From contig NC_092352.1 of assembly GCF_963676685.1 (NCBI RefSeq), positions 55,676,001 to 55,740,000 on the forward strand: DNA of 64,000 nucleotides. The letters are read 5' to 3'. Numbering within the stretch: position 1 is the stretch's first letter; the number at the start of each line of letters is the position of its first letter. The notes under the pieces were generated by a model. The model was given only the letters and a program-made list of their open reading frames with translations, ran no database searches and had not been told where the DNA came from. The translations under genes were made by a program, and so were the position numbers. Positions 49,811 through 55,800 of the stretch are shown piece after piece. The stretch comes from Mytilus edulis (Eukaryota).

Positions 49811-52800
49811 TTATCTTGCAGCCATAGACACCTGCCAGACACGGATCAGATTGTCTGTGTAACCAGCAAATAGGGTTTGTCCGTCTGATGACCATGCTAA
49901 AGATATACACTGTGGAGCTTGTGCTTTGGAGCTTGCTGAAATGACTTCTTGTCTGAGCTCATCAACAACGATCTTTCCTTCAAGATCCTGTAAACAAAAT
50001 ATAATCATTAATACGATGAAAAAGAAAATATCTTTTTAGTACTCTAGTTTTGTAAATTTATCATAGAAGTTTACTTATATCCTTGATAATTAAAAAAAAC
50101 CCTTGTAAATGTATTTTTTGCGACATTCATTTTTCTTTTTTTGTAACAAATGCGTATGAAATTTCTCGTAATTTCTGGCTGAAAATTTTACATCAATTTT
50201 TTTTTTCTTCATTTGTTTAACATTTTGTTATGCCAGCTGGTCTTTTACAGCTTACTATATTCTATTGGTTTTTGCTCATTGCTGTAGTCAGTATGTTGCC
50301 CTTTAGTTGCTAACAGCATTTTTAATTGGTCACTGGTGGTTTCTACATGTACTTGTCCAATTAGCAACCATAACACATCTACTCATTTATATTTATAGTT
50401 AAGAAGAAGTTCATACAAGAAAGGTTTAAATCAGACACCCTCATATTTGCAGGATTTTTTCATTGCTGTCAAAAAATATGTGAAAATCTATAATAATTGG
50501 GTGCTCCAATATATCAAATCAGCTTAAGTTAACTTCACTTAACTTAGATGTTAGGGTTCTTGCTTAGGATTTTTGAAGGCGAGTCCAGGGACTCATCATT
50601 TTTAGCCATGACGAGTCCAACAGCAAGAAGAAAATATTTTATTGCAAGATAATGTAATATTTTAGTCTCCATTTCCTTACAGAGCAATGAAATAACATTT
50701 AATTAAGATAATTTTTAAACTTTTCCTATAAAATGATGATATTTGTGTTTTACTGTGTTCAGTTTATAAAATATTTTAATCTTGATGCATCTGTGGACTC
50801 ACCAGTTTTGGAAATTTAGTTTAACTAATATATCACTAAGTAAAGTTAACTTCAAACTTTTTTTTAAATGCTGATTCATTTTCTATTTAGATATATCTGT
50901 TTTCAAGTTTTTCACTTGTCTTGTTGCTTGCGGTCTCATTATTTAATCATCTTTATTTACATATTTCAAAATGTGTCAAGATTATAAATCATTGAATTAA
51001 TATACCTACCCATATTTTGATACTTGGACCGGTAGCAGCACAGAGCCAATATCTGTTTGGACTAAAGGTCAATGCATTAATAACATCACCACCGTCTAAT
51101 GTGTACAAGTGTTTGCCTTCATTCAGATCCCATAACATAGCTTGTCCGTCCTACAATACATCAATATGTACAATTAGATTTTTCTTCCAACATGAAATCA
51201 ATTTATCAAATATCAGAAATAGGTTGGTTTCTATTTAAAAACTTTAGAATAGTTTAGTGGGACTATTCTAATTTTCATATCCATTTGTATCTTAAGCTTC
51301 TAAAGTTGCCCTCATATTTGCAGGATTTTTTCATGATTTTTCAAATAATTGTGAAAAAATATAATCATTGGGCAACAAAAAATAATTTAATACTTTGTAT
51401 AAACCCCTAAAAGTGTTTTGCATACCTAACTCTATGCACATTTATGCTTTCAACTGATATATAGTTTATAGCAGGTTTTACACCAATTGGTAGTTTAAAA
51501 TCTCTTGATGTTCAAGACAAAATTAATACATTTTCATTCTTGTTTAGGCCAAAAAAAAATATATGTCTGTTTCCTGTTTCCCGACCGACCCTGACTTAAA
51601 CCCCCCAACCCTAGATCTTTTTATTCAAATCCGGAAAAAAATTGGTTCCGGTCCGATCCAGATCCGTATTTTACTATGCCCAAACAATCAAAATGGCTGC
51701 TCACAGCACAAATGTGCTACAATTAAGGTTTTAAAAATGTCAGCACTGGGAGGATTATTCAATTAAAGCTTCTTTAAAGGGATTAAATCATTTTGAGGTA
51801 CAGGACCCTAACCAAACATGACATTTAACCACCTGCAAAAAAAAAAAAAAAATCCCGACCTACCAACCCTGATTTATTTGCCTTGGAGGCAGGAAACAGA
51901 CATATTTTTTTTTGGCCTTATGGGAGTCCGAACAAATGGGGATTGTGTCCATTGTAAAATATAAATTCCCTAACAAGTTGAACTAGGTGATCACCTTAGC
52001 AAAATAATCTTTATGCAGGTAAGCACTTATAATATTAAACTTGATATAACTTAGTCATGGTATGATACGAAAAGACTGTTTGTGTTTTGTCCAAATTCTA
52101 AAGTTCTAAATTAAGCAACTCTAAAACAGCTAGTTGAAAACATGATTTTTTTCCCCTTGTTTTCAGAGTAATGATATATTTTTATTTTCTTATCAGCTAA
52201 CCGAAGTGCCCTCATATTTGCAGGATTTTTTCATGATTTTCAAATGATTGTGAAAAAGTATAATCATTGGGCATCACATGATAACTTTATATAGTATACC
52301 AACAATGGCCTAAAGTGTTCCGTTACTCTATTAAATCAAATGTATTAGATCAACTGACAGTGCACCCAATTTTACATTTTACAATAAATATGTTAGATTT
52401 AAAGTATTCTTTATTTCTATTCAATGTTTTGAATTTTAACCCTTTTTCAGATCAGGAATTTGCTAAATAATTTAAGCAAGACTTGATTATGTAATGTTTA
52501 TGATACATGTAGATTAAATGCAATTTCTCCTATAGATTTTTTTTTAGCTGTGATGCAAAATTCACCTTTGCAACCCAACTCAATATTTTTATCAAATTAA
52601 AGGACTCCATTTTGTTCTTTCATAGGGAGAACACTTGGTATTAGAAATTGTCTGGTAAAAATTTTACATTTTACAATAAATATGTTAGATTTAAAGTATT
52701 CTTTATTTCTATTCAATGTTTGGAATTTTAACCCTTTTTCAGATCAGGAATTTGCTAAATAATTTAAGCAAGACTTGATTATGTAATGTTTATGATACAT

Positions 52801-55800
52801 GTAGATTAAATGCAATTTCTCCTATAGATTTTTTTTTAGCTCTGTGATGCAAAATTCACCTTTGCAACCTAACTAATATTTTTATCAAATTAAAGGACTC
52901 CATTTTGTTCTTTCACAGGGAGAACACTTGGTATTAGAAATTGTCTGGTAAAGTGCAAACTATTACAATTTTTGCATCCATTTTTATCTTAAGTTTTCAC
53001 AGATACCCTCATATTTGCAGGATTTTTTCATTATATTTCAATTGATTGTGAAAAAATATAATCCTCGGGTATCATAATATCTTTATACATTCTGAAGTGT
53101 TTTTGTTCTGTACATGCTCTTGACTAATTTGGGCTTTCAACTATCAGTGTACTCCACTTTACAACCTTTATTGTTTTAAAATTAAATGTGTAGTTTATTT
53201 TTATTTTGTAGGTTTCAACCATTTTCAATTTCATGTTAGCATGATTATCTAATGAATGAAACAATATCAGAGAAGTAAAAGTTCATTTGCCAAACTGTGT
53301 TAATGATTATATTGAAGTGGTATATACAGCCTATAACCTAGACCACTTTAGCCAGGCTAATTAGTAAAAAAAACTTTTTGTTTTTCAAAACTTGTATGAC
53401 GCCCAACATTTTTTAACTCATCTGTGCAAATGTACACAGACATGGAAATTATTCTGAACTTTATTTTAGTGTGTAAACACTGTTGCTTGCTACAATCTCT
53501 TTCGGTGAGGCTTGTGTTTTAAGAAAAAAATTGAAATCTACATGCTTATTTTCTTGAACATAATGTCATCTAGCGGTTACTTAAACATGTTACCTCATAT
53601 AAATTAATAGTTTCATGAAAATCAATAGCTAATACATGTAATGTAATAATCATTGGTAACACAATCAAAAGTATCTGTATCTCATAACACTATATGATAT
53701 CTTAATTATAAGTATGAAAATTTCAATTATTCCTGATTTATTTATGTGGAAGTTGACCTAAGTTCGCAAAATTGATAGCACATTTGTGAAAAATACAACC
53801 CCTTGGAGTCAGGTCAGTGTTTTTTAAAATTCATTCACAATGTCATACAAACCTTTCCACCAGATGCACACAGAGAGCCATCAGGAGAAACAGTAACAGT
53901 ATTAAGGTAACCAGTATGTCCAATATGGTTGGTTTTTAGTTTACAGTTAGTCAAATTCCAAACCTGTAATACAAAAAAACCAACATTACTGTAGTGTAAT
54001 ACTAAGATCAGTTGTCTGGAATAAAGAAAACATAATATGTCCCTGTATTTCTATGTTTTCAAAAGGTCAAACACAATTGAAATTGGTAGCAATCTATAAA
54101 TTTTTGAAAACAAAATAAAAATGAATTTGAAACCAAAGCTTTTATGAAAAGTCTGTGATCAATATTTAAGATTTATTTGAAACTTCAACTTAATTAATGA
54201 ATGGAATTCTTACCTTAACATGTTTGTCCCATCCACATGAAACAATAATTGGATTGGCAGTATTTGGTGAAAATCTAACACAGGATACCCAATCACTATG
54301 GCCTTCATCCTGTAGATTAGTAAATTTAAAAGATTATTTCATATATCAGCCATTTTAAAATATAAACATTTATAAATCAGGCCATTATGTTACGATTTCA
54401 TTAGATACTATAGGTTTTGGCATCAAGTCAATTTAGGGCTTGAGTAACAGAGTTGGCAGCACCAAGGCCTCATTTTAAGAAATTTGTAAGTCAAGAGAAC
54501 ATTACTGCAGGGTTGCTTGTTTTACCTCATAATTTGAGTAGTTTCATGTTGATCAATAGCTAATACATGTATATTTCATAATCATTGGTAAAACAGAACA
54601 AGAGGACTGATGAGAGAATTCACTACAAATTTAGACATAACTTCACTCCATCATAAAATTACACATTACTAAGAGTACAACATTTTGGCTTGAAACACCA
54701 TATCCAGAATTTTGTTTTGTTGTTTTTAGAGTCTGAGTACAAATCCTTTTGGCCTATAAATATCACACTTGAAACTCTGAATATTACATTGTACCTTTCA
54801 TGCAAAAATAACATCTGAATGTGTCAATTATATCATAGACTTCAATATCAGATTATTGAATGCTGTGTGCGTGTACAAAGTAATTATTGTGTTAAGTACC
54901 TGAATGGTGTATTTACAGACACCAAGGGTATTCCACAGTTTGATAGATTTGTCTCTGGATCCAGAAACAATCTGTCTGTTGTCAGCAGAGAAAGCTACAC
55001 TGAGGACATCTTTGTCGTGGTTGTCAAACAAACGGGTTGTTGTTCCTCTAAAAAGTACCATAGTGAAAATTAATGCTACATCATTTTTACCTGTACATTG
55101 TATGTAGTATGGGAATGATATCAAACTCAAATATTAACAATGTGTTCACACTACACACACAAAAAAAGTTTCCAATTCAGAAATTAATGCAAGGTTTTTA
55201 ATAATGGGGAAAATGCAACACATTTTAAACGCAATAATTTTAACTCGCATTTGAAATATTTGATATGAATTAAACCGAATTTTTCTCAAAACCTTAAAAA
55301 TTAAAATCGCATTTTAAGTCTAAAATAACAAAAACGCAATAATAAATGCACCAATAGTTTCTGAATTTACAGTAGATGCAGTAAAAGATGTTATGCATTA
55401 GAGGTAATTTGACATTTATGGCATTTTTGTTCATTTAGTTTCTTATTGTACTACTTAAGCTTTGTCAAGTCAATTTTATGAAAACTTTGAAAGAACATTT
55501 AATCAGATAATCAAAAAGCCTTACGCTCCAAGATCCCACAAACGTAGAGTCTTGTCCCATGATCCAGACAAAGCAAACTGGCCATCAGATGACATGACTA
55601 CATCTGATACAAAGTGACCATGACCTCTTAAACATCTGAGTGGTAAACCATAATTTGTCTCGTCTCTGGTCAATTTCCACATAATCAAGGTCTTGTCTGA
55701 AAATAAGAATTGTTGAAATTCAAAAGAAGACAATGACTGGCTACATATATAATACATATATCCTGCCCTATAATTTGTTGTCAACCTTTATACAAACGTT

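Follow-up and report, generated by a model that had tools for sequence, protein, structure and literature searches.

Six probable box C/D small nucleolar RNA genes with a common U-A kink-turn pair in the introns of RACK1 of Mytilus edulis

The minus strand of a 64,000-nt stretch of Mytilus edulis DNA (contig NC_092352.1, positions 55,676,001 to 55,740,000; the whole stretch is called the window below, and positions refer to it unless another contig is named) carries a RACK1 gene, and the introns of this gene contain six units of 67-76 nt, designated A to F, which are very probably box C/D small nucleolar RNA (snoRNA) genes, as judged from their boxes, stems, covariation and guides. The units were identified by script on the minus strand of positions 50200-54800; their number, strand and positions, the separate terminal stem of each, and their D, D' and C' boxes are all as claimed in the original prediction, which had been made from the letters of the DNA. 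The seven coding exons of RACK1 were treated singly and not joined into one spliced model. RACK1 chains of ribosome structures in PDB match the exon at 51010-51150 (E ~1e-31), and joints in RNA sequencing (RNA-seq) reads, 51149/53852 and 53961/54212, confirm two introns, one of 2702 nt (intron 5, 51150-53851), home of units B, C, D and E, and one of 250 nt (53962-54211), seen in spliced RNA reads. No further snoRNA candidates were found in introns 1 and 2, either by Rfam in the E-value mode or by the box-plus-stem scan described below. The features are as follows.

49814..58801, minus strand: RACK1 host gene, seven coding exons, recognized from exon translations, a PDB match and spliced RNA reads
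58690-58801, 55530-55690, 54903-55049, 54212-54309, 53852-53961, 51010-51149 and 49814-49986, minus strand: coding exons of RACK1, approximate borders
54519-54594, minus strand: unit F, paralog in intron 3, with the 18S D' guide as in E; terminal stem GUUUUACC/GGUAAAAC
53588-53661, minus strand: unit E, paralog in intron 5, with the common box frame; D' guide ACAUGUAUUAGCUA; terminal stem UGUUACC/GGUAACA
53002-53073, minus strand: unit D, SNORD96-like, in intron 5; C box AGGAUUA (GAGGAUUA); terminal stem GAUACCC/GGGUAUC
52207-52273, minus strand: unit C, intact SNORD96-like, in intron 5; 5-bp terminal stem UGCCC/GGGCA
51305-51376, minus strand: unit B, intact SNORD96-like, lying 155 nt before the 3' splice site of intron 5; 7-bp terminal stem GUUGCCC/GGGCAAC; D guide UCCUGCAAAU
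50436-50503, minus strand: unit A, SNORD96-like, in intron 6; C box AUUAUUA in the assembly; terminal stem CACCC/GGGUG

In all six units the D box is AUGA (followed by GG), the D' box UUGA and the C' box AUGAAA, and the C and D boxes are directly flanked by terminal stems of 5-9 bp, the stem of unit F having 8 bp, or 9 bp if one flank pair is counted. The C box is AUGAUUA, with CCA before it, in units B, C, E and F, and altered in A and D, again in agreement with the prediction. One frame, CCAAUGAUUAU...UUGA...AUGAAA...UAUGAGG, is common to E, F and A-D. The identity of unit A to B (85%) and to C (84%) is confined to the unit, and A-D agree at every position of the 26 nt between C' and D, with flanks that are not alignable. 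The boxes are shared by the six units because of common descent by local duplication; this explanation, one of the two that had been proposed for them, is favored by the whole frame being shared by E, F and A-D, by the residence of all copies in one gene, and by a parallel guide switch in the metagenome contig L071, described below.

With the terminal stem taken as stem I, the C and D boxes would form a kink turn (k-turn), where the 5' strand has the bulge AAU and then G,A,U,U,A,U, and the 3' strand is A,U,A,U,G,A. The pairs are read as sheared G.A and A.G, U.U, and then Watson-Crick U-A, A-U and U-A. The sole departure from the RUGAUGA/CUGA consensus is the replacement of G-C by U-A at position 6 of the C box and position 1 of the D box. 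This Watson-Crick pair is U-A in 6/6 units, and four copies retain the tandem G.A core; the reading of the k-turn given in the prediction is supported on both points. For Snu13 to bind, a U must reportedly be bulged, stem I must begin with an intact pair, and neither of the sheared pairs may be missing (PMC8413462, PMC7277114); the elements reported as required are all present in units B, C, E and F, which have two sheared G.A pairs and a 3-nt bulge ending in U (AAU-GA...UGA). In unit A of the assembly, the first sheared G.A pair has U instead of its G, and in unit D the protruding U of the bulge (L3) is changed to G. The second pair to which covariation had been ascribed, A-U in C'/D', is indeed present in all units, but it is invariant and hence constitutes no evidence of covariation.

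The two altered copies are probably decaying. Unit D is probably impaired. Position 50495 is C on the plus strand in a sister organism label (runs X1 and X21; both reads and contigs), which restores the C box AUGAUUA; the defect of unit A is therefore an allele or species difference, and unit A of the assembly probably represents an inactive allele. Contigs of a third organism label (run X18, 54421-54700) have the same sequence for unit F, and differ in this region at 54618 only. The locus thus occurs under three organism labels, all closely related. One low-depth contig has C>G at 52209, a change that would break one pair in the terminal stem of unit C.

The terminal stems differ between the units and covary: six pairs (14 cells) are changed on both sides, none of 500 shuffles reaches the observed score, and slid controls score far lower. 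In pairwise BLAST of the units with 400-nt flanks, similarity of 80-90% stops at or within ~40 nt of the unit borders. Such conserved islands with compensated stems have the look of working or recently working snoRNA genes.

The units are also unique to this locus. Scanning of both strands of the full 64-kb window for AUGAUUA...AUGA with a stem of 5 bp or longer yields the four intact units only. In the entire genome (1.37 Gb) there are six occurrences of the strict frame CCAATGATTAT...TATGAGG and none of the reversed control, four of the six being RACK1 units; BLAST of units B and F against the same genome finds RACK1 copies only. The other two strict-frame matches are an identical 54-nt string (C2:31437537-31437590 and C13:72836020-72836073), which was rejected as a chance match, as it has no terminal stem and lies inside a 3-kb duplicate with 99.5% identity on two chromosomes. 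Further genome matches of the pattern combining the C box with the 5.8S guide (L150, L151) were likewise stemless and were discarded as chance ones.

For identification of targets, the spacers were compared with the ribosomal DNA of the same genome, located first in the assembly; an initial 18S pattern search of the genome had produced thousands of chance matches and was abandoned. In units A-D the spacer before the D box (AAAAAAUCCUGCAAAU; core UCCUGCAA) pairs with 5.8S ribosomal RNA (rRNA) at UUGCAGGA, with eight contiguous Watson-Crick pairs and one more past a mismatch, and counting five nucleotides upstream from D leads to G74, the homologue of human Gm75. According to published data on SNORD96, human SNORD96A resides in an intron of GNB2L1/RACK1 and is the predicted guide of 5.8S Gm75 (PMC7812721), RACK1 intron 2 hosts U96A in human and mouse, with U95 residing in intron 1 of RACK1 (PMC3941584), and the Gm75-equivalent site is methylated in Arabidopsis too (PMC8351944). 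The assignment of A-D as SNORD96-like, made originally, is supported. They share with SNORD96/U96A (RF00055) the host gene, the core of the D guide, the homologous 5.8S G at the fifth nucleotide, a length of ~70 nt, and the intronic location on the sense strand. They differ from it in having boxes AUGAUUA/AUGA instead of UGAUGA/CUGA and a guide shortened to 8+1 bp, in being present as four copies, which occupy introns 5 and 6 instead of intron 2, and in not being scored by the Rfam model. Apart from canonical SNORD96, no guide for the 5.8S Gm75-equivalent turned up elsewhere in the genome among the best candidates scored, and genome searches for SNORD96, SNORD95 and U54 gave nothing usable among the best candidates scored. 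The possibility that the D' spacer of A-D (UUUUCACA...) adds a split guide or an accessory duplex on 5.8S, immediately 5' of the target, was considered and rejected, as 6-14% of shuffles are as good; better duplexes for this spacer exist elsewhere in rRNA. For the metagenome contig L144 (see below) the same pairing is matched by 1.6% of shuffles.

Units E and F carry a different guide. The spacer that precedes their D' box (ACAUGUAUUAGCUA) is complementary to 18S rRNA at AGCUAAUACAUG over 12 contiguous Watson-Crick pairs, and by the fifth-nucleotide rule it points at 18S U164, which we take to be the equivalent of human U169. The same 18S stretch is spanned by the guides of SNORD44 and SNORD45, which target human A166, A159 and U172, U169 being a site of neither. 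The label SNORD45, initially given to E and F, is not supported: while the guides overlap, the register to D' selects the equivalent of U169, both units have the frame found in the SNORD96-like copies, and no Rfam match to SNORD44 or SNORD45 is observed at E-values up to 10. The D spacers of E and F are unlike each other, that of E not being conserved with that of F; in the D spacer of F, CUCAAAUU, a likeness to the 5.8S guide UGCAAAU is retained, a sign of descent from the A-D type.

Relatives of the units were sought in metagenomes by a single scan, allowing for G or U at position 6 of the C box and C or A at position 1 of the D box, followed by the 5.8S guide. It returned 120 stretches, most of them due to chance, but tblastn with the RACK1 exons of the window demonstrates that five contigs hold RACK1 genes with the match inside intron 2. 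Like A-D, these SNORD96-like copies (in L071, L122, L069/L146 and L142) are residents of RACK1 introns with a 5.8S guide; unlike A-D, most of them have canonical boxes and lie in intron 2. In L071, L122 and L069/L146 the boxes are UGAUGA/CUGA (GACUGAUGAUGA...GUCCUGCAAUUCUGAAGUC), and the best Rfam match of these canonical relatives is SNORD96, with 26-31 bits. L142 contains a GC-rich, vertebrate-like RACK1 gene, whose copy, CUCUCCUGAUGAUUAG...GUCCUGCAAUUAUGACGGGAGAG, has the D box AUGA and does not match RF00055. The AUGAUUA register is available in it (UGAUGAUUA/AUGA), but both registers are imperfect, and MAFFT picks the UGAUGA one, leaving an unpaired G opposite A. Beside this variant intron-2 copy, intron 6 of the same gene has a canonical SNORD95 (L142:2818-2889, plus strand; 46.7 bits, below the gathering score). 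In view of this score and position of SNORD95, and of the missing RF00055 match, L142 was not assigned to human, and neither was any other contig.

The boxes of the window units, AUGAUUA/AUGA, recur in L144 and, less clearly, in L142. L144 is an AT-rich 1-kb contig with the unit AGCC-AAUGAUUA...UUGA...GGUCCUGCAAUU-AUGA-GGCU, which combines these boxes with the full 11-nt guide; tblastn with the window exons detected no RACK1 exon in it. Upstream of the intact unit, on the reverse strand at ~250-330 and 380-440, there are two more copies, the second decayed, with 78% identity to window unit B across 46 nt, and the third partial; a birth-and-death array exists in this organism also. Among credible SNORD96-like snoRNAs both G-C and U-A are seen, while the mismatched combinations G/A or U/C are found in none, apart from the ambiguous L142.

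Like the window, L071 contains several paralogs per gene, one of them switched to an 18S guide. Its three copies with the SNORD96 frame, at 84-147, 2088-2150 and 4590-4657 on the minus strand, reside in introns 5, 3 and 2, respectively. The guide of the intron-3 copy is altered by a few substitutions and pairs over 9 bp with 18S AUUGGAGGG. To judge from this comparison, the guide switch within one frame would be the same process as that proposed for E and F.

Other snoRNA families of the genome have ordinary boxes: the six copies of U14 read are canonical (GAUGAUGA...UCUGA), and so are the four copies of U18 (AAUGAUGA...CUGA), hence the variant is a property of the RACK1 snoRNAs. The U-A pair is a trait of the RACK1 SNORD96-type lineage and not of the genome. 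U14 forms clusters of four and three copies (G000:C2:78983018-78997473 and C2:10690456-10697583), and four copies of U18 lie within a few kb (G000:C4:34725343-34733037); multi-copy snoRNA families in one host locus seem usual in this genome.

The variant pair has a precedent in a curated family. The Rfam consensus of U54 (RF00206), as given in the cmscan output, is GUGAUU...UAUGA, which shows G-C replaced by U-A in k-turn stem II just as in the window units; as its guide (18S AAUAGCGUAUAU) and host gene differ, U54 is not homologous to them. The conserved D' box of yeast U18 is AUGA (PMC5389607). A literature search for AUGAUUA in combination with snoRNA yielded no match, and a search for snoRNA studies of mussels found none.

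The expectation that standard annotation would miss the units is borne out, as Rfam has no match in the window at the gathering score. The check that had been suggested, with the Rfam models of SNORD96 and SNORD45, gave no match to either family: at E-values up to 10, only generic weak C/D matches are observed, with no SNORD96, SNORD44 or SNORD45 on the units. The best weak matches of unit B are generic C/D models spanning the whole unit.

Taken together, the data are best explained if the six units are paralogous intron-encoded box C/D snoRNA genes, local duplicates of a long-time RACK1 resident, SNORD96, that share one compensated change; we consider this likely. From what was observed here, that is, the anatomy, genome uniqueness, stem covariation, guide-rRNA complementarity, SNORD96-like copies in other RACK1 genes, and canonical boxes elsewhere, we infer expression, protein binding and methylation along the following lines. 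After splicing, the intron would be debranched and trimmed back to the terminal stem of each unit, and the C/D k-turn would bind Snu13 and recruit Nop58, Nop56 and fibrillarin. Units A-D would pair with 5.8S via UCCUGCAA and methylate G74, the equivalent of human Gm75. E and F, having kept the frame with another guide before D', would pair with 18S AGCUAAUACAUG and methylate U164, presumably equivalent to human U169. The replacement of G-C by U-A would be one compensated change that predated the duplications and was inherited by the six copies.

Several observations weigh against this interpretation. The 5.8S guide of A-D is short (8+1 bp, where ~10 nt or more is expected of a C/D guide), and two positions paired in the orthologs are mismatched in 4/4 copies; no convincing rRNA target was found for the D' spacer of A-D. 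To our knowledge, human U169 is not a known methylation site. The gathering threshold of SNORD96 (RF00055), 43 bits, is not reached by any window unit. One intron with four snoRNAs, at distances between 0.15 and 2.4 kb from the 3' splice site, is unusual for animals, although in mammals long external stems are known to make processing independent of position, and flies and plants have intronic clusters. Finally, in two raw-read RNA-seq runs the exons are covered at ~1000x and ~100x, and the units at ~0. These two, among the four sequencing runs compared, are ordinary RNA-seq libraries, which lose 70-nt RNAs, and come from a sister organism label, so that the near-zero depth neither supports nor refutes expression. 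Low-depth contigs over the units run past their borders into the intron, and reflect pre-mRNA or DNA.

Some of the same facts would be accommodated if all six units were dead SNORD96 duplicates with deviant boxes due to decay. The C-box changes in A and D are disabling, the guide is cut, the units have neither reads nor Rfam matches at the gathering score, and decayed copies are seen in L144 too. Pseudogenization, however, does not explain why in 6/6 copies the same two box changes complement each other, why the terminal stems keep pairing through compensatory changes, or why the block between C' and D is identical in A-D, where the flanks cannot be aligned; moreover, these boxes and an 11-nt guide occur together in the intact unit of an independent organism (L144), and among the best candidates scored in the genome no other guide for the otherwise conserved 5.8S site turned up, apart from canonical SNORD96. 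We regard pseudogenes throughout as unlikely. A functional specialization of the SNORD96 lineage, e.g., altered Nop58/Nop56 loading or regulated assembly, in place of a neutral U-A change in stem II, is in our opinion distinctly improbable. Other RACK1-resident SNORD96-like snoRNAs use G-C, as does human SNORD96A at this pair, and the U54 consensus with the same U-A makes the pair seem simply tolerated. Such specialization would agree with retention of U-A in the six copies and L144, and possibly in the vertebrate-like L142, whose register is ambiguous, and also with reviews stating that the sequence of stem II matters for binding of Nop56, Nop58 and fibrillarin (PMC7277114).

The two remaining explanations are much weaker. 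A lineage-wide AU-rich code, in which AUGAUUA/AUGA would serve C/D snoRNAs of the genome generally, had been proposed originally as the alternative to common ancestry, and indeed the change is common to two guide families and the genome is AT-rich. Given the canonical U14 (GAUGAUGA...CUGA) and U18, for which it is already refuted, and the absence of the strict frame as a stemmed unit anywhere else, we view such a code as extremely unlikely. Equally hard to uphold is a derivation of the units from some dispersed repeat or mobile element in which box-like words happen to occur. Deep repeats are present in the same introns, at 50447-50800 and 51476-51916, but they are recorded as not overlapping the units, and the repeat test set out in the prediction gave RACK1 copies only in the genome BLAST of B and F, with the stemmed frame nowhere else.

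The local duplicates of SNORD96 add unannotated snoRNA genes, missed by standard models, to a mollusc-type genome, and indicate that the residence of SNORD96 in RACK1 is old and widespread. They provide a natural example of a compensated stem II change inherited through duplications, with birth, guide switching and decay. In practice, a snoRNA scanner should not insist on CUGA but allow any complementary pair between position 6 of the C box and position 1 of the D box. As the stem II variant is tolerated and already precedented, the understanding of box C/D small nucleolar ribonucleoprotein function is unchanged. A bolder possibility, which we put forward tentatively and with some doubt, is that E and F are working guides producing an 18S 2'-O-methyl-U (human U169 equivalent) that is not known from model organisms, the guide having arisen by replacement in a duplicated SNORD96 frame, the U-A stem II being a tolerated heritable k-turn across distant animals (this genome, L144 and perhaps L142). 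If true, RACK1 would be a nursery where new rRNA methylation guides are born.

Some minor observations concern the host gene. Human RACK1 protein is ~96% identical, and exon identity is thus unable to separate taxa; a search with the exon-6 peptide returned many short fragment proteins. In intron 5, between units C and D (52400-52990), there is a tandem duplicate of ~295 bp, with two copies ~98% identical. The intron stretches 50447-50800 and 51476-51916 mentioned above are very deep in DNA and RNA runs, on both strands and with many loose ends, and look like dispersed repeats; one of them adjoins a poly-T tract at 51827-51861.

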